A stretch of 64,000 bases of DNA from Dendrobates tinctorius (Eukaryota): assembly GCF_039654945.1 (NCBI RefSeq), contig NW_027361714.1, positions 44,826,001 through 44,890,000 on the forward strand, in the 5' to 3' direction. The notes beneath the pieces were generated by a model. The model was not told where the DNA came from. It searched no databases and worked only from the letters and a program-made list of their open reading frames with translations. Each line of letters begins with the position of its first letter. Position 1 is the stretch's first letter. Position numbers and translations under genes: made by a program. Below are positions 16,727 through 49,881 of this stretch, in pieces.

Positions 16727-19307
16727 GAGGTGCTGCTCACAAAATTAGAAAATCATCAAAAAGTTAATTTATTTTAGTTGCAAAATACAATACAATACAA
16801 AAGTGAAACTCATTATATAGAGTCATTACAAACAGTGTGATTTATTTTAAGTGTTTATTTCTGTTAATGCTGATGATTATGGCTTACAGCCATTGAAAAC
16901 CCAAAAGTGAATTAGAATACTTTATAACACCAGCTTGAAAAATGATATTAAAATCTGAAATGTTGGCCTACTGAAATGTATATTCAGTAAATGCCCTCAA
17001 TACTTGGTCGGGGCTCCTTTTGCATCAATTACTGCATCAATGCGGCATGGCGTGGAGGCGATCAGCCTGTGGCACTACTGAGATGTTATAGAAGCCCTGG
17101 TTGCTTTGATCACATCCTTCAGCTCGTCTGCATTGTTGGCTCTGGTGTCTCTCATCTTCCTCTTGACAATACCCCATAAATTCTCTATGGGGTTAAAGTC
17201 AGGCGAGTTTACTGGCCAATCAAGCACAGTGATACTGTTGTTTCAAAACCAGGTATTGCTACTTTTAGCAGTGTGAACATGTGCCAACTTCCAAGTCCTG
17301 CTGGAGAATGAAATTTCCATCTCCAAAAAGCTTGTCGTCATAGGGAAGCATGAAGTGCTCCCCTTCTTCCCAGAGCCATAACTTTAATTTTTCCATCAAT
17401 ATGGCCATGTGAGTGCTTAATTTTTGTGGGACGAGTTGTACTTTTGAAACACATCATTGATTTTAGCATATCTTGTACTTGAAAAAGGGAAAAAAAAATT
17501 GCAAGTGCGGTGAAATTGCAAAAAAAAGTGCAATCTCACAAGTTTTTTGTTTGTCTTTTTTGCTAGGTTCACATAATGCTAAAACTGACCAGCCATTATG
17601 ATTCTCCAGGTCATTACGAGTTCATAGACACCAAGTGGTGAAAAAAAAAATCAAAGTTTGCTAAAAAAAAAAGAAAATAAAAATTGCGCCAATTTCCGAT
17701 ACCCATAGGGTCTCCATTTTTCGTGATCTGGGGGTGGTGAGGGCTTATTTTTTGAGTGCCGAGCTGACGTTTTTAAGGGTACTATTTATATGCAGATATG
17801 ATCTTTTGATTGCCCGTTATTGCATTTTAATGCAATATCGCGTTGACCAAAAAAACGTAATTCTGGTGTTTTGATTTTTTTTGCCGCTATGCCGTTTAGC
17901 GATCAGGTTAATCTTTTTTTATTGATAGATCGGGCGATTCTTAAAGCGGCGCTACCTATTGTGTATGTGTGATTTTTTTCTTAACTGTTTTATTTTGAAT
18001 GGGGCGAAAGGGGGGTGAATTAAACTTATATTTTTTTCATATTTTTTAAAACATTTTTTTAAAATTTTGGCATGCTTTAATAACCTCAATGGGAGGCTAG
18101 AAGCTGCCACAACTTGATCGGCTCTGCTACATATTGGCAATGAGCAGACCACAGGTGGTGCTCATAGCAATCCAGCATCAACAACCATAGAGGCCTCTGG
18201 TTGTTATGCCAACTCATCGCTAACCACCGATCACATGACGGGGGTTGGCGATGCACGTATTTCCGGCCCGGTGGCCAGAAGCGCTGGTTAAATGCCGCTG
18301 TCAGCGTTTGACAGCGGCATTTAACTAGTTAATAGGTGCGGGTGGACGGGCGTCCAATTGCAATAAGGGGTTAATATTTCCTGGTAGACGGCTGCGCTGA
18401 CTTTGGTCTTGATAACACACAGTCAACTTACACCAGCAGATGACATGATTCCCCAACCTGTCACTGATTGTGGAAACTTCACACTAGACCTCAAGCAGCT
18501 TGGAATGTGTGCCTCTCCACTCTTCCTCCAGACTCTGGGACCTTGATTTCAAAATGAAATGCAAAATTTACTTTAATCTGAAAGCAACACCTTGGACCAC
18601 TGAGCAACAGTCCAGTTCTTTTTCTCTTTGACCAAGGTAAGACGCTTCTGGTGTTGTCTATTAGTCATGAGTGGCTTGACACAAGGAATGAGACACTTGT
18701 TGCCCATGTCTGTGATACGTCTGTGTGTGGTGGCTCTTGAAGAAATTACTCCAGGCGGAAATCCTCTCTTTGTGAATCTCCTCCAAATTTTTGAATGGCC
18801 TTTTCTTAACAATCCTTTCAAGGCTGTGGTTATCCCGGTTGCTTGTGCACCTTTTTCTACCACAGTTTTTCCTTCCACTCAACTTTCTACTAATATGCTT
18901 GGATACAGCACTCTGTGAACAGCCAGCTTCTTTAGCAATGACCTTTTGTGACTTACCCTTCTTGTGGAGTGTCTCAATGACTGCCTTCTGGATATCTGTC
19001 AAGTCAGCAATCTTCCCAATGATTGTGGAGCCTACTGAAACAGCCAAAGGGCCCGAAACAGCCTAAGGGACCTTTTTAAATACTTAGGAAGCATTTGCAG
19101 ATGTTTTTTGTTAATTATTCTAATTTACTGAGACAATGACTTTTGGGTTTTCATTGGCTGTAAGCCATAATCATCAACATAAACAGAAATAAACAATTGA
19201 AATAGATCATTTTGTTTGTAATGACTCTATATGAGTTTCACTTTTTGTATTGAAAAACTGAAAAAAATAACTTTTTGATGATATGCTAATTTAGCGAGAA
19301 GCACTTG
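16727..19307 (-). mobile_element. Degraded Tc1 element interrupted by a piggyBac-type MITE
   Basis: TIRs (C)AGGTGCT.CTCACAAAATTAG / CTAATTTAGCGAGAAGCACTTG, TA flanks, HTH SQKVIAKEAGCSQSAVSKHI, GRKR, WSKVLLSD. Confidence 0.9.
17361..18370 (-). mobile_element. piggyBac-type non-autonomous element (same family as 41791-43638)
   Basis: Ends AGGGG|TTAA (18371-18374); reverse-complement similarity to 41791-43638. Confidence 0.75.
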
Positions 19308-20287: not shown

Positions 20288-23200
20288 TTAGAATCATAGA
20301 ATCGTAGAGTTGGAAAGGACCTCCTGGGCCATCTGGTCCAACCCCCTGCTCAAAGCAGGATTCGCTAAATCATCTCAGACAGATGTCTGTCCAGCCTCTG
20401 TTTGAAGACTTCTATTGAAAGAGAACTCACCACCTCTCGTGGCAGCCTGTTCCACTCATTGATCACTCTGTCAAAAAGTTTTTTCTAATATCTAATCTGT
20501 GTCTCCTCCCATTCAGTTTCATCCCATTGCTACTAGTCTTTCTTTGTGCACATGAGAATAAAGATGATCCTTCTACAATGTGACAGCCCTTGAGATATTT
20601 GTAGACAGCTATTAAGTCTCCTCTCAGTCTTCTCTTCTGCAAGCTAAACATTCCCAAATCCTGCAACCTTTCCTCATAAGACAGGGTTTGCAGACCGGTC
20701 ACTGTTGTGAGTTCATTCTCGGGTTCCCCTTCTGAACTCCCTCTGGTGGTGTCGGGAGGTGGTGATGCTGGTTTGATTGGTGGAGATCTGTCATCTCAGG
20801 ATGGGGATGATGATTGGATCTCGGGATTCTCAGATTGGATTTAAGACAGCCGCCGCCCTATTCAGTTGCTGGTGATTCCTTCTGCTTGTCAGCTCTTGGT
20901 TTTCAGCTCTGTTCCAGTCATCTAAAGCTAAGTTTTTCTGCTAATGTTCACACTTGATTTTGTTGGTCTATTCAGTTTTTGTGTGGTCTGCCAGACCCGG
21001 CTGGGGGCTGAGCTGAATTTCCACTCTTATTTATCAGTATTTTGACAATTGGCTTTTTGTCCCTTACTAGTTCGGTCTCTTTTTGCTCTGTCTCAGAATA
21101 TTCCAGAGTGCTGATATAGTGGGAGAAGTCTAGTGACTTCAGGGTTAATTTTGCTATCAGAAGTGTTGGACATTATTTTTGTAGGGTTTTTTGCAGGTTG
21201 CAGACAGTGACTTGCCTTTCCTTTCCTGTCTAGTTAGTTTGGGCCCCATCATTTGCTCAGCCTATTTTCCTGCCTGTGTTTGTGCCTTCATCTTGTTTCA
21301 CCGTCAATACATGTGTGGGGCTAACTATTCCTTTGGGGTCTGCTCTGGGGCAGTTAGTTTTCCCTTTTCTTGCTTTAGGCTTATGTAGTCCTCCGGCTGT
21401 GACGAGGCGTCTAGGAACATCGTAGGCACGCTCCACGGCTACTGCTAGTTGTGTGGTAAGATCAGGGATCTGCAATCTGCATAGTTACCAACTTCTCTGG
21501 TTTTCTGTGGCTTAGCTTGTTTTGTTTTTTTTTTTCTCCTCGGTGACCCATTCATAACAGGTCACCATTCTGGTCGCTCTTTTCTGAACTTGCTCCAGTT
21601 TGTTGAGGTCTTTTTTAAAATGTGGCGCCCAAAACTGGACACAGTATTCCAGATGAGGTCTGACCAAAGAGGAGTAGATGGCAATAATGACTTCACGTGA
21701 TCTAGACTGTATGCTTCTGTTTATACATCCTAGAAATGCATTTGCCTTTTTGCTGCTGCATCACGCTGGTGACTCATATTCAGTATGTGATCAATTAGTA
21801 TACCCAAGTCTTTTTCACATGTGCTGTTGCTTAGCCCTATTCCTCCCATTTTGTATATGCTTTTTTTATTTTTATTGCTAAGATGTAGTACTTTGCATTT
21901 TCCCTGTTAAAAACCATTCTGTTAGTTGCTGCCCACTGCTCCAGTTTATTTATATCTTTTTGAATCCTCTCTCTCTTCTCTAGTATTAGCTATCCCTCCT
22001 AGCTTTGTGTCATCAACAAATTTAATCAGTTTACCCTCAATTCCTTCATCTAAATCGTTAATAAAGATGTTGAACAATACAGGGCCCAGGACAGAGCCCT
22101 GTGGTACCCCACTTGAGACATTCTTCCAACTGGATGTGCAGCCATTTACAACCACTCTTTGGGTCCGATCACTAAGCCAGTTATGAATCCACCTAACAGT
22201 TGCCTTGTCCATTCCATACTTAGCCATTTCTTCAATAAGGATTGTGTGAGATACTTTGTCAAATGCTTTGCTGAAGTCAAGATATCCTATACCTACAGCA
22301 TTTTCCTGATCCACCCAATCAGTGATTCTGTCATAGAAGAAAATTAAGTTAGTCTGACATGACTTATTAGTTACAAACCCATGCTGACTCTGTTTAATCA
22401 CTTAATTCTTGTCCAGGTACTTACATACATGTTGTTTAATAATTTGTTCAAAGATCTTTCCTGGTATAGAAGTCATACTCACCGGCCTATAGTTCCCTAG
22501 GTCCACCTTCTTCCCCTTTTTGAAGATAGGAACATTTGCTCTTCTCCAGTCTTTTGGGACTTCTCCTGTTCTCCAAGAATTTTCAAAGATTTTGGAGAGG
22601 GGTTCAAAAATTTCTTCTGCTATCTCCTTCAGAACTCTGGGGTGTAATTCATCTGGACCTGGAGACTTGAATTCATTTAGGTTAGCTAAGTGTTTCCTCA
22701 CTAACTTTCTGTTTATAGATTTCCTGGATTCTTCTATTCCCTTAATAGGACAGTGAAGAACCGTTGATGTTACATTTCCTTTATGAGAGAAAACAGATGC
22801 AAAATAGGAATTTAAAAGTTTGGCCTTCTCAACATCCTGTCTTACCATTTCATCATTTTCATTCTGTAAAAATCCTATAGCATCTTTGACTTTTCTTTTA
22901 CTTTTGACATATCCCCAAAATCCTTATTGTTTTTGACATCTCTTGCAAGCCTCAATTCATTGTCATCTTTAGTAATCTGATTTGTGCCCTGCAATTTCTG
23001 CAGACAGCATTATATTCTTCTTTAGATATGCCTCCTTCTTTCCATTTTATAAACATTTCTTTCTTCCTTTTTAGCATGTGCTTAAGTTCTGTGTTCATTC
23101 ATCCTGGTTTCCTTAAACGCTTCCTATTCTTCCCTCTTTTCGGAATTGTTAACGATTGGGCTTTGAGAATTTCATTTTTCAAGATTTCCCATCCTTCCTG

Positions 23201-23948
23201 GACATTTTTGTCCTTAAGGATATCCAGCCATTGAATCCCTCCAATTCTCTTTCTGAATCCCTTAAAATCTGCCTTTCTGAAATCTAACCTTGACGTCTGA
23301 GTCTTCATAGGTCTTCCTCCTCTAGTTATCCAAAATAGCATGGTCGCTTCCTCCTAGGGTCCCAGCCACTTTTACTTCCTCAACCATTTCCTCCCTGTTT
23401 ATAAGGATTATATCCAAGGTAGCAGTTCCCCTTGTTTTCTCCCCTACCTTTTGAAACATAAAGTTGTCAGCAAATGAGGATAAGAATTTCCTTGACCTGT
23501 TAGTTTTGCCTGAGAGTGATTCCCAACAAATGTCAGGATTGTTGAAATCTCCCATGACAACTATGTCATTTTTTGGAGAACTCGGCCATTTGATGCATAA
23601 AGAGTTCATCCATATCTTCAGCTTGCACAGGCGGCCTGTAGTAAATGCCTACAATGGTGTCCTTTCCATTGTTCTGTCCTTGTATTCTTACCCAAACAGT
23701 TTCCACAGAACTCCCAGTCTCTGAAGCTTCAATCTCTGTGCCGATATACGCGTTTCTAACATACAATGCGACACCTCCTCCTCGTTTATCAAGTCTGTTT
23801 CTAGCAAATAAGTTGTATCCTTCTATCCTTGTATTCCAATCATGTGTATCGTCCCACCAAGTTTCAGTGATTCCAATGACATCATATTTCTTTTCCTGCG
23901 TTAGTAGTTCCATTTCTCCTTGTTTGTTGCCCATGCTTTGTGCATTAG
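20288..23948 (-). mobile_element. CR1 LINE copy 1: nearly complete ORF2 (APE endonuclease + RT), frameshifted and split by a solo LTR
   Basis: [60 protein letters not shown]; (ATTCTATG)n 3' tail at ~20288-20305. Confidence 0.95.
20703..21559 (+). mobile_element. Solo LTR (Gypsy-like) with 6-bp TSD GGTCAC
   Basis: TGTTGTG...CATAACA termini; GGTCAC at 20697-20702 and 21560-21565; the empty site is visible in CR1 copy 2 (~24383-24396). Confidence 0.9.
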
Positions 23949-23966
23949 TATTACAGTTTATTACTT

Positions 23967-25281
23967 AGAATCATAGAATCATAGAATCGTAGAGTTGGAA
24001 GGGACCTCCTGGGCCATCTGGTCCAACCCCCTGCTCAAAGCAGGATTCGCTAAATCATCCCAGTCAGATGTCTGTCCAGCCTCTGTTTGAAGACTTCCAT
24101 TGAAGGAGAACTCACCACTTCTCGTGGCAGCCTGTTCCACTCATTGATCACTCTAACTGTCAAAAAGTTTTTTCTAATATCTAATCTGTGTCTCCTCCCA
24201 TTCAGTTTCATCCCATTGCTTCTAGTCTTTCCTTGTGCAAATGAGAATAAAGTTGATCCTTCTACAATGTGACAGCCCTTTAGATATTTGTAGACAGCTA
24301 TTAAGTCTCCTCTCAGTCTTCTCTTTTGCAAACTAAACATTCCCAAATCCTGCAACCTTTCCTCATAAGACAGGGTTTGCAGACCGGTCACCATTCTGGT
24401 CGCTCTTTTCTGAACTTGCTCCAGTTTGTTGATGTCTTTTTTAAAATGTGGTGCCCAAAACTGGACACAATATTCCAGATGAGGTCTGACCAAAGAGGAG
24501 TAGAGGGAAATAATGACTTCACGTGATCTAGACTGTATGCTTCTGTTAATACATCCTAGAATTGCATTTGCCTTTTTTGCTGCTGCATCACACTGTTGAC
24601 TCATATTCAGTCTGTGATCTATTAGTATACCCAAGTCTTTTTCACATGTGCTGTCACTTAGCCCTATTCCTCCCATTCTATATATGCTTTTTCCATTTTT
24701 ATTGCCCAGATGTAGTACTTTGCATTTCTCCCTGTTAAAAACCATTCTGTTAGTTGCTGCCCACTTCTCCAGTTTATTTAAATCTTTTTGAATCCTCTCT
24801 CTCTCTTCTCTAGTATTAGCTATCCCTCCTAGCTTTGTGTCATCAGCAAATTTAATCAGTTTACCCTCAATTCCTTCATCTAAATCATTGATAAAGATGT
24901 TGAACAATACAGCGCCCAGGACAGAGCCCTGTGGTACCCCACTTGAGACATTCTTCCAACTGGATGTGCAGCCATTTACGACCACTCTTTGGGTCCGATC
25001 ACTAAGCCAGTTATGAATCCACCTAACAGTTGCCTTGTCCATTCCATACTTAATCATTTTTTCAATAAGGATTGTATGAGAGACTTTGTCAAATGCTTTG
25101 CTGAAGTCAAGATATACTATATCTACAGCATTTCCTTGATCCACCCAATCAGTGATACCGTCATAGAAGGAAATTAAGTTAGTCTGACATGACTTATTAG
25201 TTACAAACCCATGCTGACTCTGTTTAATCACTTCATTCTTATCCAGGTATTGACATACATGTTGTTTAATAATTTGTTCAA
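23967..25281 (-). mobile_element. CR1 LINE copy 2, 5'-truncated
   Basis: (ATTCTATG)n tail; highly similar to copy 1. Confidence 0.95.
24050..25231 (-). CDS. CR1 reverse transcriptase, open 393-aa C-terminal part (truncated, non-autonomous)
   Basis: [41 protein letters not shown]. Confidence 0.85.
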   Translation of the reverse strand: MIKQSQHGFVTNKSCQTNLISFYDGITDWVDQGNAVDIVYLDFSKAFDKVSHTILIEKMIKYGMDKATVRWIHNWLSDRTQRVVVNGCTSSWKNVSSGVPQGSVLGAVLFNIFINDLDEGIEGKLIKFADDTKLGGIANTREERERIQKDLNKLEKWAATNRMVFNREKCKVLHLGNKNGKSIYRMGGIGLSDSTCEKDLGILIDHRLNMSQQCDAAAKKANAILGCINRSIQSRSREVIISLYSSLVRPHLEYCVQFWAPHFKKDINKLEQVQKRATRMVTGLQTLSYEERLQDLGMFSLQKRRLRGDLIAVYKYLKGCHIVEGSTLFSFAQGKTRSNGMKLNGRRHRLDIRKNFLTVRVINEWNRLPREVVSSPSMEVFKQRLDRHLTGMI

Positions 25282-28142: not shown

Positions 28143-29748
28143 CAGTGGGGAAAAAAAGTATTTAGTCAGTCAGCAGTAGTGCAAGTTCCACCACTTAAAA
28201 AGATGAGAGGCGTCTGTAATTTACATCATAGGTAGACCTCAACTATGGGAGACAAACTGAGAAAAAAAAATCCAGAAAATCACATTGTCTGTTTTTTTTT
28301 CATTTTATTTGCATATTATGGTGGAAAATAAGTATTTGGTCAGAAACAAGCAATCAAGATTTCTGGCTCTCACAGACCTGTAACTTCTTCTTTAAGAGTC
28401 TCCTCTTTCCTCCACTCATTACCTGTAGTAATGGCACCTGTTTAAACTTGTTATCAGTATAAAAAGACACCTGTGCACACCCTCAAACAGTCTGACTCCA
28501 AACTCCACTATGGTGAAGACCAAAGAGCTGTCAAAGGACACCAGAAACAAAATTGTAGCCCTGCACCAGGCTGGGAAGACTGAATCTGCAATAGCCAACC
28601 AGCTTGGAGTGAAGAAATCAACTGTGGGAGCAATAATTAGAAAATGGAAGACATACAAGACCACTGATAATCTCCCTCGATCTGGTGCTCCACGCAAAAT
28701 CCCACCCCGTGGGGTCAGAATGATCACAAGAACGGTGAGCAAAAATCCCAGAACCACGCGGGGGGACCTAGTGAATGAACTGCAGAGAGCTGGGACCAAT
28801 GTAACAAGGCCTACCATAAGTAACACACTACGCCACCATGGACTCAGATCCTGCAGTGCCAGACGAGTCCCACTGCTTAAGCCTGTACATGTCCGGGCCC
28901 GTCTGAAGTTTGCTAGAGAGCATTTGGATGATCCAGAGGAGTTTTGGGAGAATGTCCTATGGTCTGATGAAACCAAACTGGAACTGATTGGTAGAAACAC
29001 AACTTGTCGTGTTTGGAGGAAAAAGAATACTGAGTTGCATCCATCAAACACCATACCTACTGTAAAGCATGGTGGTGGAAACATCATGCTTTGGGGCTGT
29101 TTCTCTGCAAAGGGGCTAGGACGACTGATCCGGGTACATGAAAGAATGAATGGGGCCATGTATCGTGAGATTTCGAGTGCAAACCTCCTTCCATCAGCAA
29201 GGGCATTGAAGATGAAACGTGGCTGGGTCTTTCAACATGACAATGATCCAAAGCACACCGCCAGGGCAACGAAGGAGTGGCTTCGTAAGAAGCATTTCAA
29301 GGTCCTGGAGTGGCCTAGCCAGTCTCCAGATCTCAACCCTATAGAAAACCTTTGGAGGGAGTTGAAAGTCCGTGTTGCCAAGCGAAAAGCCAAAAACATC
29401 ACTGCTCTAGAGGAGATCTGCATGGAGGAATGGGCCAACATACCAACAACAGTGTGTGGCAACCTTGTGAAGACTTACAGAAAACGTTTGACCTCTGTCA
29501 TTGCCAACAAAGGATATATCACAAAGTATTGAGATGAAATTTTGTTTCTGACCAAATACTTATTTTCCACCATAATATGCAAATAAAATGAAAAAAAAAC
29601 AGACAATGTGATTTTCTGGATTTTTTTTTCTCAGTTTGTCTCCCATAGTTGAGGTCTACCTATGATGTAAATTACAGACGCCTCTCATCTTTTTAAGTGG
29701 TGGAACTTGCACTATTGCTGACTGACTAAATACTTTTTTTCCCCACTG
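28143..29748 (+). mobile_element. Intact young Tc1 element, Passport/Eagle(Glan)-like
   Basis: TA TSD and ~205-bp near-perfect TIRs (CAGTGGGGAAAAAAAGTATTTAGTCAG...). Confidence 0.97.
28510..29532 (+). CDS. Tc1 DD34E transposase, 340 aa, uninterrupted
   Basis: Paired-like [34 protein letters not shown] with 34 aa between D and E. Confidence 0.95.
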
Positions 29749-38532: not shown

Positions 38533-39094
38533 CACCTCTCTATGTCTACAAATGTGGGCTCTGTATTTCATTGCAAATATTAGTTACTAATAATCCATTG
38601 TAGAGAAGTCAGGTAGGCTATGGCTAAATCCCAGCTCTACAGGTTCTCACAAGATGACCTGGCTAGCATTGCATATAACTACACTAGCTGTTCTCCTTAG
38701 TCAGTTCAGAGAAGCTGACCAGACTAGTTGTGTCTTGGCGCTGAGGAGAAACAAGCCAGAATCCCTGTCTAAAAAAAAGTCTGCACAGGCCATGTACAGA
38801 GAACCTTAAGTAAAACTGGTTGCTATTGAAAATAGCCGTTTTGTTTGGTCGAGCTGGGGCTGGCTCAGCTGAGTAGGAGCAGCCAGGGTCTGTTCTGTTT
38901 AGTTAAAGCCTGGACAGGGAAAGAGGATTTATGTCTATGAGTTTATTTTTTTGCTGTTCAACCTTTGGAAAGCAATAAAAACTGCATGTTTGGACCAAAA
39001 CTGCACTGCTTGTGTGAACGCTACATAAGGCCTAATGCCTACCAAAGATAGTGAATGCCTACACAACATACACATTTTATATCAATATAATGCA

Positions 39095-41065
39095 CACCCT
39101 CACAGAAATCTTAAACACCTCAATCTACACTCACTGTCTGAATCCCTCCTCCCTTTTACAGACATAAGTTCCCTACACAATGCGGATGCCGCTGCCACTC
39201 TATACAACACCAGAATAGCTGCAGCTCTGGAATCGGTTGCCCCTCTCACACATACCAAAGCTCGTAAAATCAACAGACAGCCGTGGTACACCAGCCTGAC
39301 AAAAGAACTGAGACGAGCTTCCAGGGTTGCCGAGCAGAGATGGAAAAGATCACGCTCCAACGATGACTTCATCACATTCAAACTGTCCCTCACTACTTTC
39401 AAGGACACACTCCACCATTACAGAAGATTGACTCTCCACTCTACTCTCAAGATCACATCACACCACTTGTACACTTGACTCGATCCCATCCCACTTCATC
39501 CCAAACCTCACAACCGTCTTCATCCCAACACTAACCCATCTCTTCAACCTATCACTAACAACTGGTGATTTCCCCTCAAGCTTTAAACATGCCTCAATCA
39601 CACCTATCCTCAAAAACCCCTCTCTTGACTCATCCTCTGTATCTAGCTATCACCTTATATCACTTCTCCCCTATGCCTCAAAACTACTGGAACACGTCCA
39701 TCTTGAACTGTCCGCCCGCCTCTCTTCTTGCTCCCTCTTCAACCACCTACAATCTGGCATCCGGCCGCACCGCTCCACTGAAACTGCCCTAAGTAAGGTC
39801 ACCTATTATCCGCCAAGGCCAAGCAACATTACTCTGTCCTCCTCCTCCTGGACCTGTCCTCTGCCTTTGACACAGTGGACCATTCCCTATTATTACAGAC
39901 TCATCTCTTGGCATCACAAACTTGGCCCTATCTTGGATCTCGTCATACCTAACAGACCGGACATTCAGCATCTCCCACTCGCACACACCACCTCCTCACC
40001 TCTATGCTGATGACACACAGATCTACATCTGTGGACCAGATATCACCTCCCTACTAACCAGAATCCCACAATGTCTGTCTGCTATTTCATCCTTCTTCTC
40101 CGCTAGATTTCTAAAACTTAATATGGACAAAAGAGAATTCATCATCTTTCTCCCATCTCACTCGACCATCCCCCCAACGGACCCATCCATTAAAGTAAAT
40201 GGCTGCCCACTCTCCCCAGTCCCACAAGCTCGCTGCCTCAGGGTAATCCTTGACAATGATCTCTCCTTCAAACCACATATCCAAGCCCTTTCCACTTCAT
40301 GCAAACTTCAACTCAAAAATATTTCACGGATCCATACATTCCTCATCCAAGACTATGCAAAAACCTTAGTCCACACCCTCAACTCCCGCCTTGTCTACTG
40401 CAACCCCCTGCTCTGTGGCCTCCCCTCTATCACTCTCTTACCCCTCCAATCTATTCTATACTCTGCTGCCTGACTAATCCACCCGTCCCCCAGCTATTCC
40501 CCGGCCTCTCCCCTCTGTCAATCCCTGCACTGGCTCCCCATTACTCAAAGACTCCAGTTCAAAACCCTAACCATGGCATACAAAGCCATCTACAACCTTT
40601 GCCCTCCATACATCTGTAACCTCGTCTCCCGGTACTTACCCACACGCAACCGCCGATCCTCACAAGATCACCTTCTCTACCTCCCTCTTATCTCTTTTTC
40701 CCCACAATCACATTCAAGATTTCTCTTGCACATCACCCCTATTTTGGAACTCTCTACCACAACATATCAGACTCTCGCCTACAATGGAAAACTTCAAAAA
40801 GAACCTGAAGACCTCTCTCTTCCGACAAGCCTACAACCTGCAGTAACCACTGATTGACCAAGCCACTGCATGATCAGCTCTACCCTCGCCTCCTGTATCC
40901 TCACCCATCCCTTGCAGATTGTGAGCCCTCACGGGCAGGTTCATCTCTCCTCCTGTACGAGTTGCGACTTGCATTTTTTAAGATTACTGTACTTGTTTTT
41001 ATTATGTATACCCCTCCTCACATGTAAAGCGCCATGAAATAAATGGCGCTATAATAATTAATAAA
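39095..41065 (+). mobile_element. L2 LINE, degraded 3' part
   Basis: QPWYTSLTKELR, LDLSSAFDTVDH, HLYADDTQIY, LHWLP; tail GTAAAGCGCCATGAAATAAATGGCGCTATAATAA. Confidence 0.9.
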
Positions 41066-42800
41066 AATATACTTGACTGTATGAAATCTTTTACCTTATA
41101 CACTGATAATGTAAAACTCATGAGTTTTGTTTAGTACAGGAAGAAGAGGAATATGTGTTGACCCAGTGATCATGTATTTTCTGGGTGTAAGGAAGGAGCA
41201 AGAGCTGCTGGGTCCTATAAAATCCAGTCAGTTCCGCTATGCAGGCAGGAGGCTGAATTTCTCCTCTAACAAAGGCTAACAGACCCAGTTACAAGGGAAA
41301 TCGGGTATGTAAAAAGAAAAAGTATTTAAATATTGAGATGGCCCCCCAAAGTTTTATTATGATCTTATGGGGGGGGGGGGGGGGGGTCACAGCATGTGAA
41401 GTAAATGAAAACTAAATACATAAAAATAAAAAAAAAAACTCTTGCCAATCCAAATTGCTGCCACTAGCCTCACCCCATCAAAATCAAGCAAACAAAAACA
41501 ATGTTTGATGTATAAAAATAATTATTATGGAAAGAGAAACAAATTGGAAAATGTATTTTACTGGTCAGACACACATTTCCTTCATTTTTCCATTGATAGC
41601 TAATGATACTGGCAAAAATGAATATAACAAAAATGATGCCTCAAGTATCATAAAAAAAAAAAGGTACAAAAACTATTTGAATGTTCGAACGTGAACACAG
41701 TTTACAGCTCTTTAAACTGCATGTAGAAATATACAAGAAATTGCGCCTCATCAGGAACAGGCGTAAATGGCCTGATCTTCAACTGATTAACCACTTTCTG
41801 ACATCAGGCGTAATAGTACGCCGAAGTCCGATTCCCTCCCTTTGATGTGTGCTCCAGCGGTAAGCTCACATCTTTCCCGGGACACGTCAGCATTTTGAAC
41901 AGCTGACATGTGCCCAGAATAGCCGCGGGTGGAATCGTGATCCACCCACTGCTATTAACCTGTTTAACTCACACTTCCGGCCACTGGGCCGGAAAGCCGC
42001 CCACCGGTGACCCCGTCACGTAATCACGGGTCATCGGTTCATTGGCATGACAACCAGAGGACTCCTGGAGACCTCTATTGCTGTCACTACCGGCTTGCTG
42101 TGATCGCCACCCAGTGGTCGGCGCTCATAGCAAGTGAGTATTTCTACTACATAGAGGCAATCGGATCATTGCCTGTATGTGGCAGAGCTGATCGGGTTGT
42201 GGCAGCTTCTAGTCTCACATGGAGACTATTGAAGCATGCCAAAAGTTAAAAAAAAAAGTTTTAAAAAATATAAAAAAATAAAAAGTTCTAAAAAAATATA
42301 AAAGTTCAAATCACCCCCCTTTCGCCCCATTCAAAATAAAACTATATAAAAAAAATCAAACATACACATATCTGCTATCGAATATATATATATATATCCT
42401 GATCGCTAAACACCGTAGCTAGAAATAAAGTCAAAACGACAGAATCACGGTTTTTTTTTGGTCGCCACGACATTGCACTAAAATGCAATAATGGGCGATC
42501 AAAAGATCGGATCTGCACCAAAATGGTATCATAAAATCAAAAATAAGCCCTCAGCAAACCTGAGATCACGAAATATGGTATAGGAAAATGGCATTTTTTT
42601 TTTAAGAAAGTTTGGAATTTTTTTTCACCACTTAGATAAAAAAGAACCTATACAAGTTTGGTGTCTATGAACTTGTAATGTGAAAAATGAGGATGAATGA
42701 ACTCATGGAGATCAACATCCAACACTGCGGAGACACCATCACATGTTTCACAATGCATTGATTCTAGAGCAATGCCCCCATCTCTTATGGGAAATATGCA

Positions 42801-42841
42801 CACACTGATGAGGGGCAATACCCCGAAACAGCTGTCTGTGG
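42801..42841 (+). ncRNA. Minimal type I hammerhead ribozyme (predicted cleavage after 42836)
   Basis: caca-CTGATGA-gggg caata cccc-GAAA-cagct-GTC^-tgtg. Confidence 0.88.
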
Positions 42842-43139
42842 ATGGATACCATGTTTTGGCATAGGTGGTTTCCTTCATTGGAGACTGCCCTTCCTGTGGT
42901 TGTTCCTTCCCAGGGAAAGACCTGGCTAGTCATTGCTTGCATTGAGAAACATGTGACGGTGTCTCCGCAGCTTGTGTTTTGCATATTTCCCATAAGGGAT
43001 GGGGGCATTTCTCTAGAATCACTGCGTTGAGAAACATGTGATGGTGTCTCCGCAGTGTTGAATGTTGATCTCCATGAGTTCATTCATCCTCATTTTTCAG
43101 TCTTTTACTAGGCATTGCTCCTACTAGCCAGTTTCCTAC

Positions 43140-43183
43140 TCCACACTGATGAGGGGCAATACCCCGAAACAGCTGTCTGTGGA
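43140..43183 (+). ncRNA. Minimal type I hammerhead ribozyme (predicted cleavage after 43177)
   Basis: tccaca-CTGATGA-gggg caata cccc-GAAA-cagct-GTC^-tgtgga; 6-bp stem I, 4-bp stem II, palindromic short stem III. Confidence 0.92.
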
Positions 43184-44361
43184 TGGATACCATGTTTTGG
43201 CATAGGTGGTTTCCTTCATTGGAGACTGCCCTTCCCGTGGTTGTTCCTTCCCGGGGAAAGACCTGGCTAGCCATTGCTTGCGTTGAGAAACATGTGATGG
43301 TGTCTCCGCGGCTTGTGTTTTGCATATGAACTTGTAATGACCTGGAGAATCAAAATGGCAGGTCAGTTTTAGCATTTAGTGAACCTACTAAAAGAGCCAA
43401 ACAAAAAAAAAGTGTGGGATTGCATTTTTTTTGCAATTTCACTGCCCATGGAATTTTTTCCCCCGTTTTCTAGTACACAACATGGTAAGACCAATAGTGT
43501 TGTTCAAAAGTACAACTCGTAATGCAAAAAACAAGCCTTCACAAGGCCATACTGACGGAAAAATAAGTTATGACTCTGGGAAGAAGGGGAGCCCAAAATA
43601 AAAATGCAAAATCGAAAATACCTCCCGTCATGAAGGGGTTAAAAGGCTACGTACATCTTTGCATCGATTTTTTTTTGCTAATTTGCTTACTAAATGCTAA
43701 GTTCAGAAACTTTCTAAGAAGTCATCATTAAAATCTTACTGCTGCTACTGTAGTCCTTAATGTAACTAGGTGCACCGCAAAAATGTTACAAATCCATCAG
43801 AGTGCCTGTTCTGACAGCTCCAGATACTACAAGCAAAAATTGTCCAAACGAACAACATTTGACAGTCTCAAAGAATCGAAATTCCTAGTGGTACCTGCAA
43901 CTTCAGCCTTCTTAGAAGCTGAGAGCCAGCTGTATATAATTACCGTAGATTATAATATTATAATTTTTGTTTAGCTCTCACTACTACTAGGTGGCTAGTA
44001 ATAGCAAGTTAACAAACTGAAACCCTCTTCCCCAATATCTCAGTGCACCTTGAAATGTGAGGAATACTTCATATCTGTAAATGAAATGACTGATATCTGT
44101 TACAAAAGTAGTTTATTACAAGCAATTACAAAGCAATTATATAATAAATCTGCAGAGTGACAAAAATAAAATAAAAATAAATAAAAAGAAGACTGTTTCA
44201 GCAGGTAGTGATTAGATTACTTTTTTATTCAACAGTTAATATATATCTATTTACATTAGATGCAGTATATATATGAATAGATATATATACACACACTACA
44301 GAAAATTATTGGTCTGACATTATGAAACTTGACCAAAATCCCTTTAATTGATGCATCTTAC

Positions 44362-45125: not shown

Positions 45126-46714
45126 CTGTATATACTCGTGTATAAGCTGACCCGTGTATAAGCTGACCCCCCTAATTTTGCCACAAAAAACTGGGAAACA
45201 TTAATTGACTCACGTATAAGCCTAGGGTGGAAAATGCAGCAGCTACTGGTAAGTTTCAAAAATAAAAATAGATGCCAATAAAAGTAAAATTAACTGAGAC
45301 ATCAGTAGGTTAAATGTTTTTGAATATCCATATTGAATCAGGTGCCCTATATAATGCTCCATACAGTTCATGATGGCCCCATAAGATGCTCCATACAAAA
45401 TACACCCCATATAATGCTGCACAAAGGTTAATAATGGCCCCGTAAGATGCTCCATAGAATATGCTGCCCCATAAGATGCTCCATAGATTATGCCCCCATA
45501 AGATGCTCCATAGAATATGCCACCATAAGATGCTCCATAGAATAGACCCCCATAAGATGCCCCATAGAATATGCCCCCATAAAATGCTCCACAGAATAGG
45601 CCCCCCCATAAGTTGCTCCATAGAATTTGCCCCATAAGATGCTCCATAGAATAGGCCCCCATAAGATGTTCCACAGAATAGGCCCCCATAAGATGCTCCA
45701 CAGAATAGGCCCTCAGGATGCTCCACAGAATAGGCCCCCATAGGATGCTCCACAAAATAGGTCCCCATAAGATGCTCCATAGAATATGCCCCCATAAGAT
45801 GCTCCACAGAATAGGCCCTCATAAGTTCATAGAATCATAGAATGGTAGAGTTGGAAGGGACCTCCTGGGCCATCTGGTCCAACCCCCTGCTCAAAGCAGG
45901 ATTCGCTAAATCATCCCAGTTAGATGTCTGTCCAGCCTCTGTTTGAAGACTTCCATTGAAGGAGAACTCACCACTTCTCGTGGCAGCCTGTTCCACTCAT
46001 TGATCACTCTAACTGTCAAAAAGTTTTTTCTAATATCTAATCTGTGTCTCCTCCCATTCAGCTTCATCCCATTGCTTCTAGTCTTTCCTTGTGCAAATGA
46101 GAATAAAGTTGCTCCATTGAATCCTCATATGCTGCTGCAAATAAAAAAAATGACATACTCACCTCTCCGTCGCTGTTGGCTCAGGACGCGGCACCCGAGA
46201 TATTCACCTGTCCACGCTCCCATGCTGCTTGCCGCTGTCTGCCACGTCATCTCTCAGTGACATTCAAGCAGCAGAGGGTGCGGCGTGCACTAACGATGTC
46301 ACCGCGCCCTCTGACCTGAACATCACAGAGGACGCGACAGACAGCGGTGAGCAGAGTGGGAATGGGGAACAGGTGAATATCGCTATACTTATCCCCCTGG
46401 CACGGTCTCTGCAGCTCCGTGCTCCCACGGTCTCCGGCACCTGCTTTCAGCGGTCACGTGGTACCGCTCATTAAAGACATGAATATACGCATTTTCATGT
46501 CTTTAATGAGCGGTACCATGTGACCGCTGAAGGCAGGCGCCGGAGACCGTGGGACAAGCAGGGGGGCTGCAGAGACAACGCCAGGTGGTATGATCTCTGA
46601 CACCCCCGCTCCCCCACCGACCCCCGGTATATGACTAGCGTATAAGCCGTGAAGGGGACTTTCAGCCCCAAAAAAATGGGCTGAAAAACTCGGCTTATAC
46701 GCGAGTATATAAGG
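45126..46714. mobile_element. pogo/Tigger-like MITE with a ~26-30 bp minisatellite (45345-45825)
   Basis: TA|CTGTATATACTCGTGTATAAG...CTTATACGCGAGTATATAAGG|TA. Confidence 0.8.
45827..46111 (-). mobile_element. CR1 3'-end fragment (copy 3) inserted in the minisatellite
   Basis: Near-identical to 23967-24255. Confidence 0.9.
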
Positions 46715-47730
46715 TATTTCTCCAAGAAAATTATTGCAATTACACATCTTGTTATACACATGTTTATTTCCTTTGTGTGTATTGGAACAACACAAAAAGA
46801 GAGGAAAAAAGGCAAGTTGGACATAATTTCACACAAAACGCCAAAAATGGTCCGGGAAAAATGGTCAGCACCCTCAACTTAATATTTGGGTGCATACCAT
46901 ATAATAAAATTCCTGCACCTTAACATCCAATTGAGGCATGAATAGGGAGTATGGGGGAGAAGCCCAGTACCTGGGTAGAGTTATATTTACAACCACTGGT
47001 CAAATAGTTGCCTGGTTATATTCGGGACAGGAAGCATGTTATCTCATCTCTAGATTATGCAAAATAGCAAGACAAATGCATATGACTTTCCTGTGATGTA
47101 GTGGGACTTTATCCCTGTATACCTTACTGGTTAGCTAGAACTGCTTCAGCATATCTATAGATGTACAATAATTATTCCGCTAATATTCAGAACTTTTTAT
47201 TAACGGCAGTTAATTTTTTGTTACAACATAATTATTTTTCATTCAGTGGGACTTTCTAGCTACAGAAACAAGGAGCTTCTATGAGTGCGGGTTTATCCCC
47301 CTCAATCACAAACATCTATATGTCTTAATGGGAGAAACTGTAAATTTTTCCAGAATTCAATCTTTTTTTTTCCCCATATCAGGAGGTATGGTTGTTATAT
47401 TGACCACCTCCTCCTGATAGGGGCAGGTAAGAGAATCAGCTATGAAATTTGTGGAGTGTCTCAATTGGATTGTAGCATCAACTTTCCAGATATTATGCTT
47501 TTACACTCCCCTAATGGAATTTCAGTTGTTTCATATAAAAAACCTTTAGCCACTAGTGCTACTTTGTTGCCAACATCATGTCATCCCAAACAAATGATTA
47601 AAAATATTCAGTTGGGAGAACTGATTCGTACCAAGAGGAATACTTCCTCAGACACCAAATTTCAATCAGAAGCAGCCTCAGTACATGAGCGATTACAAAA
47701 TCGAAAATCTCCAGTTTGGATGATTAAGAG

Positions 47731-48666
47731 TATGCAAATAAAGTCCATGGAGCCTCATTTCAGAGTCTCAAACACAGGACTAGCCAGATCTTCCTCCAGG
47801 GAAGTACCCAGCCAAGGAGTGGCTCCTTTCGGAAACCACCATTACCACCATATTAAGTGGCCCTTTAAGTCAATATCCAGCTCTTTACGAGGTTACAGAT
47901 ATGACAAGGGAAATACCAAGGCCAGGTATCCATCCACAGACAGCTGTTTCGGGGTTGGATACCTGGCCTTGGTATTTCCCTTGTCATATCTGTAAACTCG
48001 TAAAGAGCTGGATATTGACTTAAAGGGCCACTTAATATGGTGGTAATGGTGGTTTCTGAAAGGAGCCACTCCTTGGCTGGGTCCTTCCCTGGAGGAAGAT
48101 CTGGCTAGTCCTGTGTTTGAGACTCTGAAATGAGGCTCCATGGACTTTATTTGCATATTCGTATTTCCTTGGGAGCAATGCACCTAGGATTTCACTGAAT
48201 GAGCGCCTTTGCCGGCTGCCGCAGTGTTTTCTTTGACTGGTCTCCCTGAGGTCAGTGATTGTTTCGTGATGTTGGTCTACTAGGCATTGTTCCCACCTAG
48301 CCAGAATCCTACTCCACACTGATGAGGGGCAACACGACGAAACAGCTGTCTGTGGATGGATACCTGGCCTTGGTATTTCCTTTGTCATATCTGTAAACTT
48401 GTAAAGAGCTTGATATTGACTTAAAGGGCCACTTAATATGGTGGTAATGGTGGTTTCCGAAAAGAGACACTCCTTGGCTGAGTCCTTCCCTGGAGGAAGA
48501 TCTGGCTAGTCCTGTGTTTCAGACTCTGAAATGAGGCTCCATGGACTTTATTTGCATATTCGTACTTCCCAGGGAGCAATGCACCTAGGATTTCACTGAA
48601 TGAGCGCCTTTGCCGGCTGCCGCAGTGTTTTCTTTGACTGGTCTCCCTGAGGTCAGTGATGGTTTC
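47731..48666 (+). mobile_element. Non-coding hammerhead retroelement B (401-bp monomer) inserted in the Penelope remnant
   Basis: 14-bp TSD TGGATGATTAA(G/T)AG (47717-47730, 48667-48680); 225-bp inverted piece, then ~1.8 tandem monomers. Confidence 0.85.
48313..48356 (+). ncRNA. Type I hammerhead ribozyme with mutated stem II
   Basis: tccaca-CTGATGA-ggggcaacacgac-GAAA-cagct-GTC^-tgtgga; the inverted half-copy at 47933-47955 keeps the CCCC strand of stem II. Confidence 0.8.
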
Positions 48667-49881
48667 TGGATGATTAATAGGGCATAGAATACTGAACAAC
48701 ACATATAGACAGGATATTCTCAGAGAAAAGAATGCACATGTAGGAGCTGGCTGCTGTGGTTAACTCCTGTGCCCGCTGCTAAAGAGAAATTAATATTCAC
48801 TGCACTCCACGCCCATGGGAGTGGAAAGCGGTGAATATTCATCTCTCTAATAGCGGACATGCTGTTAGCCGCAGCCGCCGGCCTCCTGCAGCTTCCGGGC
48901 TTTCATGTGTGCCCGCTACTTAAGAGAATGAATATTCACTGCTCTCCACTCCCATAGGTGTGGGACAGCTTCCTGTTCTGATGCCAGCAGCTGATTTAAG
49001 AGTGTAAGCAAAGCATGGCAGTGACATCATATGGTGCCCACAAGCAGAAGATAACTGCCAGAATACTCACTGCTCCCCACGCCGGGACTATAGGCGTGTG
49101 GCGCAGTGAATATTCACTGATCTTTAATAGCTGGCACAGTGTTACCTGCATCCGCCAGGTGATCACATGTGCCCACTATTAAAGAGAATGAATATTCAAT
49201 GCTCTCAGAAGAGGAGAACATCGCAGGAAACTACTCTAGTAATCGTGAGTCTTTGTGGATCTATATATTACAAACTAGAACGCCGCAAGGCATGAATGTA
49301 AGACACGATTTACTATATCATTACGACTGATTTTCTCCCCTCTTCCTCAGATGTACTAGTGTTTTGCCATCTCTGTACAATGTTTTTATTTTATGAGATA
49401 TATGTTTTTATTTTGTCTATACTTTGCTCTATTTTGACACACCAAGGCCATGTGTCTCAAACAGGATATGATATAAAACGCTGCTTGATTAAAGACCTGT
49501 CAGTGTGCAATGCGTTTGCCAATCAGTTATTCCCAAAAAAAATTGTGATATCTTTGATATATTGTTTTTACATGGATCTAATAAAGTGAGTGATTTTGTG
49601 AACTTTCTGGGTGCTGGATTTTGGCTTTCTACTTTATTGCACACTTCTTTTGTAAACTACTCCAGGTCTATCATATTTGAAGGATGCCTTTTCCCAATGG
49701 CAATTTTAAGATCTCTCCACAGGTGTTCAATGGCATTCAGATCTGGACTCATTGCTGGCCACTTTAGAACTCTCGAGCATTTTATTTCCATACAGTTCCG
49801 GGTGCTTCTTGAAGTATGTTTGGAGTCTTTGTCCTGTGGAGGACCCATGAACTAGGAAGCAAACTCAGCTTTCTGAAACTA

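Follow-up and report, generated by a model that had tools for sequence, protein, structure and literature searches.

The locus at 42666-43339 of the 64-kb window (the window being the whole stretch of DNA that was analysed) raises the question of what kind of element it holds, and of how a short repeat with two hammerhead ribozyme cores came to be inserted there. In our view, this insertion, here called element A, very probably arose by retrotransposition from a non-coding frog repeat that is present in many copies and belongs to the non-LTR retrozymes; for this family we propose a cycle of cleavage, circularisation and Penelope-type insertion. The sequence-only reading had placed the locus among the non-coding hammerhead repeats of the non-LTR retrozyme or satellite-2 kind, inserted as a partial tandem with an inverted copy at the 5' end and a target-site duplication (TSD) around it; this classification was right. 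The insertion is made up as follows.

42666-42680, no strand: left TSD copy, 15 bp, TATGAACTTGTAATG; direct repeat at 100% identity, single copy in the empty-site paralog
42681-42800, minus strand: inverted arm, the reverse complement of 42980-43099 over 120 nt, 95% identity
42801-42983, plus strand: direct unit, 5'-truncated, 183 nt, with the first CUGAUGA 4 nt after its start
42984-43324, plus strand: complete 341-nt unit in insertion phase, with terminus ...GTGTTTTGCA
43325-43339, no strand: right TSD copy, 15 bp, direct repeat
42837-43177, plus strand: predicted hammerhead-to-hammerhead RNA monomer, 341 nt, the distance between the predicted cut sites

Element A proper thus spans 42681-43324, and its direct part of 524 nt corresponds to 1.54 units of 341 nt, with a direct repeat of 186 nt (42801-42986 and 43142-43327, 97% identity, spacing 341). 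The inverted copy proposed earlier was borne out in full, and the only repeats present are the unit itself and this inverted arm; no LTR, PBS or PPT was found in the element (PBS and PPT by eye only). The period of 341 nt, with two hammerhead cores, lies inside the ~170-400 nt head-to-tail range of metazoan non-LTR retrozymes. At the end of the full unit, 3 nt (TAT) are common to element and target. Repeat comparison gave two perfect 15-nt direct copies of TATGAACTTGTAATG, for which the chance expectation of an exact 15-mer repeat within 1.4 kb is ~0.0009; the duplication in plant retrozymes is shorter, at 4 bp. The TSDs of Penelope-like elements (PLEs) are long and variable, and element A likewise has one.

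The host sequence is itself a repeat, and another copy of it in the window shows the target before insertion.

17357-18292, minus strand: another copy of the host repeat, uninterrupted, containing the empty site
17612-17626, minus strand: paralogous empty site, one 15-mer copy (14/15 identical), read straight through

At this paralogous site, which is without the element, the 15-mer is single and not pre-duplicated, which together with the two copies around element A upholds the perfect TSD claimed by the earlier reading. In addition, public contigs join ~42643-42676 directly onto ~43325-43337; four public runs, made up of assembled contigs that may derive from RNA or from DNA, include many contigs that skip element A in this way, and run X17 alone holds 63 contigs with the 5' flank immediately before 43325. 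Due to the uninterrupted paralog and the public contigs with the empty site, element A is a true insertion, and it was inserted into an older repeat. The family to which it belongs is abundant: in runs labelled with three organisms, the contigs that match it at ≥90% identity number from the hundreds to the thousands.

The same architecture is found a second time in the window, in a homologous insertion with a longer unit.

47717-48680, plus strand: element B, homologous retrozyme insertion with a 401-nt unit and the architecture of element A
47731-47951: inverted arm of element B
47953-48666: direct units of element B
48319-48350: hammerhead of element B, with helix II mutated

The TSD of element B is 13/14 identical. 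Both elements contain an octamer-like motif (TTTTGCAT in A, ATTTGCAT in B), a likeness to satellite 2 that is drawn by description; the satellite 2 promoter is of the snRNA type.

These observations bear on two alternatives that invoke no retrotransposition. Replication slippage or fold-back repair can yield tandem and inverted repeats, and the local amplification of retrozymes into satellites has been discussed (Li, Clavereau & Pollet, bioRxiv 2026, 10.64898/2026.07.22.740005), so that a rearrangement at the DNA level, in which a local tandem and inverted duplication seeds a satellite and RNA plays no part, might be considered. We regard it as very improbable, given the precise 15-bp host duplication that flanks the structure, the uninterrupted paralogous copies of the host repeat, the dispersal of the family at high copy, and the recurrence of this layout, bounded by a separate TSD, at an unrelated site 5 kb away, making two such sites in the window. 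Assembly trouble caused by the tandem and inverted structures of PLEs is a known hazard (Craig et al. 2021, PMC8557442), and element A is spanned whole by no public contig. However, the two TSD copies are perfect and mark the exact outer limits, specific substitutions tell the three repeat segments of A apart, and the layout recurs independently in element B, and we thus give hardly any credence to an artefact in the assembly of a high-copy repeat.

The hammerheads of element A are arranged as follows.

42805-42836, plus strand: hammerhead core 1, predicted cut after C42836; stem I of 4 bp, with its 5' strand replaced at the inversion joint
43132-43187, plus strand: hammerhead 2, complete
43134-36 and 43185-87, plus strand: distal stem of hammerhead 2
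43137-39 (TAC) and 43184 (T), plus strand: loop 1
43140-45 and 43178-83, plus strand: stem I
43146-52, plus strand: CUGAUGA
43153-56 and 43162-65, plus strand: helix II, with loop CAAUA
43166-68, plus strand: GAA
43169-70 and 43175-76, plus strand: helix III AC/GU, with loop AGCU
43177, plus strand: C17

The 32-nt cores at 42805-42836 and 43146-43177 are identical, which places the predicted cuts after 42836 and after 43177. The earlier claim of identical type I cores with these cuts thus stands, but the two ribozymes as a whole differ: at the second site helix I has 6 bp plus the distal stem and bears a UAC/U internal loop, whereas at the first it is reduced to 4 bp. The conserved type I core (CUGAUGA ... 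GAA-A ... U-C) is complete at both sites and is surrounded by three helices: helix II of 4 bp with a 5-nt loop, helix III of 2 bp with a palindromic tetraloop, and an open-ended helix I. When searched with a strict descriptor of type I (CUGAUGA, 4-bp helix II, GAA, A15.1-U16.1, 2-bp helix III, H17 and stem I), the 64 kb yielded exactly these two sites and 300 dinucleotide shuffles yielded no match, while a relaxed scan of the whole window for minimal, PLE-type hammerheads returned the same two sites and one match at 61987, which is probably due to chance. The exact 32-nt core had no matches in a metagenome scan.

The covariance-model check did not favour the motif, as no Rfam family reached gathering score or E-value thresholds for element A, the best scores being 16.0 and 15.3 bits for Hammerhead_3, with a gathering cut-off of 48.5. 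In our interpretation, this poor fit may stem from a helix III of just 2 bp and from the ~280-nt body that stem I encloses. The sequence-only reading had also described the motif as a "minimal" hammerhead of the Penelope type, which does not agree with its helix lengths: in the minimal hammerheads of PLE pLTRs helix II has 7-8 bp and helix I 4-5 bp and there is no helix III, whereas in element A these helices have 4 and 6 bp and helix III is present. Judged from sequence, and by the definition that Cervera & de la Pena gave in 2014 for canonical type I hammerheads of metazoans (PMC4209133), the motif belongs to this canonical form, like those of axolotl retrozymes.

The direct part of element A also informs on the template. 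Its longest ORFs have 111 and 81 aa and match nothing in Pfam, in agreement with the earlier statement that there is no real ORF, and no RT or GIY-YIG coding sequence is found within the TSD-bounded insert, which sets it apart from autonomous PLEs. The 341-nt period, the lack of an ORF, and a direct part (524 nt) longer than one unit point to a multimer or a circle as template, and not to a truncated coding element.

The insertion itself is of a familiar type. A partial tandem with an inverted copy is the hallmark of Penelope-like insertions (Craig et al. 2021, PMC8557442), as the earlier reading had held for the inverted 5' segment, and element A displays the partial tandem, the adjacent inverted 5' copy and the TSD, sharing with PLE pLTRs also the presence of a hammerhead in the repeat (PMC4209133, PMC8557442). 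This same architecture could be explained by a heavily 5'-truncated autonomous PLE, whose 3' pLTR itself holds tandem 341-nt hammerhead repeats, in which case there would be no independent non-coding family. Li et al. matched retrozyme consensus sequences to the ends of PLEs and placed them as sister to pLTRs (10.64898/2026.07.22.740005), and tandem hammerheads have been described in axolotl PLEs by Cervera and de la Pena (PMC7229834), which would suit such an origin. We nevertheless consider it unlikely, because nothing in the TSD-bounded insert encodes RT or GIY-YIG, the repeats recur at 341 nt and not at the several kilobases of a PLE unit, the hammerhead has the canonical retrozyme form and not the long helix II and missing helix III of the pLTR type, and the ORF-less layout is repeated in a second family, that of element B.

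No intact Penelope ORF was found within the 64-kb window. The RTs at 21.9-25.2 kb were rejected as a Penelope partner, since the adjoining APE endonuclease domain makes them LINE-like, and so was the RT remnant at 39-41 kb, which is LINE-like, with a YADD-type motif by eye. The segment 47285-47716 beside element B, a candidate PLE remnant, has no Pfam match, and its sole lead is a language-model pointer to PF26215.

From the anatomy of this retrotransposed copy and from its published relatives, we infer a cycle that would comprise transcription, cleavage, circularisation and the action of a Penelope-type reverse transcriptase. Multimeric copies would first be transcribed. Helix III is weak (2 bp), and its palindromic ACAGCUGU may then pair two motifs as a double hammerhead, which would cut after GUC to release 341-nt monomers with 5'-OH and 2',3'-cyclic phosphate ends; in a cofold of two hammerhead copies, the double hammerhead, whose helix III is formed by 8 bp of ACAGCUGU, is predicted at -46.1 kcal/mol, versus 2 x -20.3 (-40.6) kcal/mol for two separate monomers. 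The monomers could be circularised by a tRNA-ligase-type enzyme (RtcB), and the GIY-YIG endonuclease of a Penelope-like element would open a staggered break at which multimeric or circular RNA is reverse-transcribed. Priming of cDNA from both nicked strands would leave 1.54 direct units on one side and the 120-nt inverted piece on the other, with the 15-bp duplication flanking them. The copy at this locus is probably an inert product, and it is doubtful as an RNA source because the upstream hammerhead lost most of its stem I at the inversion joint.

Folding of the monomer indicates a further pairing inside the unit.

42922-42930, plus strand: 5' half of a long-range pairing, CTGGCTAGT, with partner 43123-43131, from the circular MFE of both families
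43123-43131, plus strand: 3' half of the long-range pairing, ACTAGCCAG, from the circular MFE and conserved in element B

The complementary pair noticed earlier, CTGGCTAG (42922-42929) with CTAGCCAG (43124-43131), is present, and both halves are kept in element B. The circular MFE of the 341-nt monomer is -104.8 kcal/mol (z = -1.73), and z-scores of -1.7 and -2.2 for families A and B are too weak to claim a selected rod-like circular fold. No compensatory changes between the two families were found in the hammerhead or in the CTGGCTAG/CTAGCCAG pairing, although both are conserved, and conservation of this kind makes the A/B comparison uninformative on structure.

Elements of this kind are already published, both as frog retrozymes and in their link to PLE pLTRs. 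Non-LTR retrozymes have been reported from axolotl and other amphibians (Cervera & de la Pena, NAR 2020, PMC7229834), where units of 331 and 353 nt have dimer-dependent hammerheads and monomers that were circularised in vitro by RtcB (PMC7229834). Element A resembles these axolotl Rtz_331 and Rtz_353 in unit size and hammerhead form, being a non-coding amphibian unit of ~330-350 nt that carries a single canonical type I hammerhead and is present in many copies; its 2-bp helix III and palindromic tetraloop are those of axolotl HHR_Amex2, and dimer dependence is thus expected. In contrast to their long array, it is a short dispersed insertion of 1.5 units with an inverted arm and a TSD. More recently, retrozymes were found in 7/7 amphibian genomes sampled, 57 Xenopus families were tied to Penelope pLTRs, and only one of nine Xenopus retrozyme dimers cleaved in vitro (10.64898/2026.07.22.740005). 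The Xenopus elements are similar by description, with an amphibian consensus mean of 316 bp, occurrence as monomers, dimers and multimers, and kinship to PLE pLTRs, but that preprint gives no account of TSDs or of inverted 5' arms in single insertions, such as element A has. Satellite 2 of newts and salamanders shares the ~330 bp unit and a type I hammerhead with a weak helix III, active as a dimer (PMC7229834, PMC4209133), but forms long tandem arrays instead of 1.5 units. Plant LTR retrozymes are likewise non-autonomous and non-coding, and their hammerhead-bounded RNA circularises (PMC4918200); their type III hammerheads in LTRs, PBS and PPT, 4-bp TSDs and mobilisation by Gypsy elements have no counterpart in element A.

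Given that hammerhead retrozymes of amphibians, including frogs, are already published, the locus alone adds little. Its value is modest and lies in a clean, TSD-bounded and ORF-less repeat with a canonical hammerhead, a paralogous empty site and an architecture typical of PLEs. What is new here is this empty site, the second element with its 401-nt unit, the canonical type I assignment and the truncated upstream stem I. The architecture gives structural support to the hypothesis of mobilisation by Penelope, for which the basis in the literature has so far been co-occurrence and sequence relatedness.

A comparison of the junctions shows that the cDNA start points lie at two positions of the unit which A and B have in common, but which are exchanged between the two ends. 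In each insertion, one nick would have started cDNA at a site X and the other at a site Y. Site X lies just after the octamer-like ...TTTGCA/TA, and site Y ~110-116 nt downstream of X; the inverted arm of A runs exactly from Y (...CATTTTTCA), where it has its outer end, back to X, where its inner end reads TGCA. It is conceivable, if rather doubtful, that Penelope-type machinery initiates at two defined sites of the retrozyme RNA, and that the mobile unit is an octamer-bounded permutation and not the hammerhead-cut monomer. If true genome-wide, such two-site initiation would offer a concrete model for the origin of PLE 'tails' and inverted copies, and junction positions that recur in two insertions might inform on the mechanism of Penelope integration.

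The direct units of A show six differences, and since five of these are CpG transitions, the units were near-identical at insertion. Non-CpG differences number 5/120 between the inverted arm and the direct copy and 1/184 between the direct units (Fisher p = 0.037), and in element B the second unit holds 7/11 private changes (p ~0.04 before correction). Unit-to-unit differences did not decide between a rolling-circle and a multimer template, the direct units of A differing almost only at CpGs. Since their insertion, these units have diverged mainly by CpG decay.

The insertion at 42681-43324 (element A) is best read as a frog non-LTR retrozyme, an ordinary copy that Penelope-type machinery put in place. 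Its parts are as follows.

Anatomy of element A (repeats from a repeat finder)
42666-42680 and 43325-43339: perfect 15-nt direct repeat TATGAACTTGTAATG
42681-42800 and 42980-43099: inverted arms, 120 nt, 95%
42801-42986 and 43142-43327: direct repeat, 186 nt, 97% identity, spacing 341 nt
42805-42836: hammerhead core 1, 32 nt, identical to core 2, predicted scissile bond after C42836
43146-43177: hammerhead core 2, 32 nt, identical to core 1, predicted scissile bond after C43177

The window contains no N bases. Within 1.4 kb, ~0.0009 exact 15-mer repeats are expected by chance. The flanks of element A are part of an older and very abundant repeat, a second copy of which (17357-18292, minus strand, same window) is uninterrupted at the site and carries a single 15-mer (17612-17626, 14/15 identical). 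Many contigs from four public runs link ~42643-42676 straight to ~43325-43337, and in 63 contigs of one public run the 5' flank stands immediately before 43325. These uninterrupted host-repeat copies are paralogous empty sites, which identify the 15-bp repeat as a target-site duplication (TSD) and element A as a true insertion. The perfect 15-bp TSD and the 120-bp inverted copy at the 5' end, both proposed in the sequence-only reading, are borne out. The host repeat (42166-42680 plus 43340-43592, and 17357-18292 on the minus strand) is very high-copy, with A-rich stretches, and its depth in the public contigs exceeds that of the retrozyme.

The direct part of element A, at 524 nt, is longer than one 341-nt unit and has no ORF between the repeats, so the template was a multimer or circle of the non-coding unit rather than a truncated coding element. 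The longest ORFs overlapping the element (111 and 81 aa) have no Pfam match, in line with the earlier statement that no real ORF is present. A partial tandem with an adjacent inverted 5' copy is described as the hallmark of Penelope-like insertions (PMC8557442). The direct units differ at six positions, five of them CpG transitions, and therefore were essentially identical at insertion and have decayed since. Non-CpG differences are in excess in the inverted arm (5/120 against the direct copy, vs 1/184 between direct units; Fisher p = 0.037), which does not fit well with a single homogeneous template. The unit also contains a duplicated 33-nt box (42938-42970 and 43023-43055, 85 nt apart, 94% identical); in the aligned unit of element B, the second retrozyme insertion in the window, we noticed no second copy that matches.

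A strict type I descriptor (CUGAUGA, 4-bp helix II, GAA, A15.1/U16.1, 2-bp helix III, H17, stem I) gave exactly two matches across the 64-kb window and no match in 300 dinucleotide-preserving shuffles; these are the two identical cores with 341-bp spacing, and predicted cuts after 42836 and 43177, that had been picked out from the sequence alone. The second motif is complete, with all three helices present.

Elements of the second hammerhead motif
43140-43145 with 43178-43183: stem I, 6 bp
internal loop: UAC opposite U, then a short distal stem
helix II: 4 bp, GGGG/CCCC, loop CAAUA
helix III: 2 bp, cap AGCU

Helix III and its cap make ACAGCUGU an 8-nt palindrome, and two copies of the motif cofold into a double hammerhead with an 8-bp helix III (-46.1 kcal/mol vs 2 x -20.3 for the monomers). 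The first motif has the same core, with the 5' strand of stem I replaced at the inversion joint, leaving 4 bp and no loop 1. Under published definitions (PMC4209133), the second motif falls in the canonical metazoan type I class, as does HHR_Amex2 from axolotl retrozymes (PMC7229834), and is not the Penelope min-HHR, in which helix II is long, helix I short and helix III absent. Rfam called neither motif, the best scores (16.0 and 15.3 bits, to Hammerhead_3) lying below the gathering cut-off of 48.5, perhaps because helix III has just 2 bp and stem I encloses a body of ~280 nt.

Retrozymes of this kind are already known and abundant. In axolotl and other amphibians, non-LTR retrozymes have been described whose hammerheads are of the canonical type I form and cleave as dimers; in vitro, the monomers were circularised by RtcB (PMC7229834). 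A 2026 preprint reports retrozymes in each of the seven amphibian genomes that it sampled and, in Xenopus, 57 families phylogenetically sister to Penelope terminal repeats (pLTRs), with in vitro cleavage in only one of nine Xenopus dimers (10.64898/2026.07.22.740005). For the present family, hundreds to thousands of contigs at least 90% alike were found in runs under three organism labels; these runs, and those behind the empty sites, are assembled contigs, none on record as RNA. The copy studied here is probably inert. Of the earlier classification, the class of non-coding hammerhead retrozyme stands, while the label 'minimal' and the assumption of an active RNA source do not.

Element B (47717-48680) has the same layout.

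Features of element B and octamer-like windows
TGGATGATTAAGAG / TGGATGATTAATAG: TSD, 13/14 identical
47731-47951: inverted arm, 221 nt
47953-48666: direct part, 1.78 units of 401 nt
48319-48350: hammerhead, helix II mutated in the direct copy
42984-43099, 43316-43327 and 48550-48558: octamer-like motif windows (elements A and B)

The CCCC strand of helix II is intact in its inverted arm. The two units can be aligned over most of their length, that of B having an extra stretch of ~70 nt, and the conserved blocks comprise the hammerhead plus ~45 nt before it and 14 nt after it, CTTCCC...CTGGCTAGT, the octamer-like TTTGCATA and a few others. The long-range CTGGCTAG/CTAGCCAG pair noted earlier inside the monomer is conserved in B and forms in the minimum-energy circular fold of each unit; the alignment of A and B gives no covariation in it, and the z-scores of the circular folds are weak (-1.7 and -2.2). 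Directly downstream, at 48758-49212, clustered direct and inverted copies of a ~23-60-nt motif (GAATATTCACTGC...) look like MITE-like or foldback repeats.

Reading the junctions of both insertions in one alignment of the units, we found that element ends fall at two recurrent positions, X and Y. Site X is the TSD-adjacent end of the direct 3' end of A (...GTGTTTTGCA; TAT shared with the target) and of the inverted arm of B (reverse complement of ...ATTTGCATA). At site Y, ~110-116 nt downstream, the inverted arm of A (...CATTTTTCA) and the direct 3' end of B (...GATGGTTTC) end six alignment columns apart. We roughly estimate the chance of two such cross-locus coincidences at ~1 in 1000; coming from two loci, the regularity is no more than suggestive. 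The inverted arm of A covers exactly the stretch from Y back to X, its overlap with the direct 3' end being the palindrome TGCA, so that element A amounts to one continuous stretch of 1.88 units with the last X-Y piece flipped to the other side. In a model that fits this arrangement, both nicks would have served as primers on a single RNA; the second primer would lie downstream of the first, and the cDNA made from it would have stopped at the point where the first had started. In B, the direct part starts ~6 nt after the predicted hammerhead cut and the inverted arm ends on reaching the 3' strand of helix II. The junctions show 0-4 nt of microhomology. The recurrent junctions of site X coincide exactly with an octamer-like motif (in A TTTTGCAT, in B a perfect ATTTGCAT), which could act as a promoter element or as the place where cDNA synthesis begins.

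No intact Penelope ORF was found in the 64-kb window. Two reverse transcriptase (RT) stretches do not look Penelope-like, the first given the APE domain beside it and the second given its LINE-like YADD RT.

21946-25231 (minus strand): LINE remnant, RVT_1 pieces adjoining an Exo_endo_phos (APE) endonuclease piece
39029-40854 (plus strand): LINE-like remnant, frameshifted RT with YADD motif

Element B itself interrupts a sequence (47285-47716 / 48681-48760) with an open frame and a YKKP...SCHP...-like stretch. Its 47285-47716 part has no Pfam hit, and a protein language-model search gave only a lead to PF26215 (HTH_animal) clusters co-occurring with RVT_1; in Penelope-like elements this domain lies between the RT and the endonuclease. 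The interrupted stretch is possibly a decayed Penelope-like ORF.

Elsewhere in the window, two overlapping 170-aa ORFs (45243-45822, minus strand) built of YGASYGG / LWSILWG-type repeats are probably a simple tandem repeat and not a gene. A Tc1/mariner (Sleeping Beauty-like) transposase ORF of 340 aa runs without interruption over 28510-29532 (plus strand), with HTH_Tnp_Tc3_2, HTH_SB and DDE_3 domains; the loose hammerhead-pattern match at 28964-29008 within it is due to chance.
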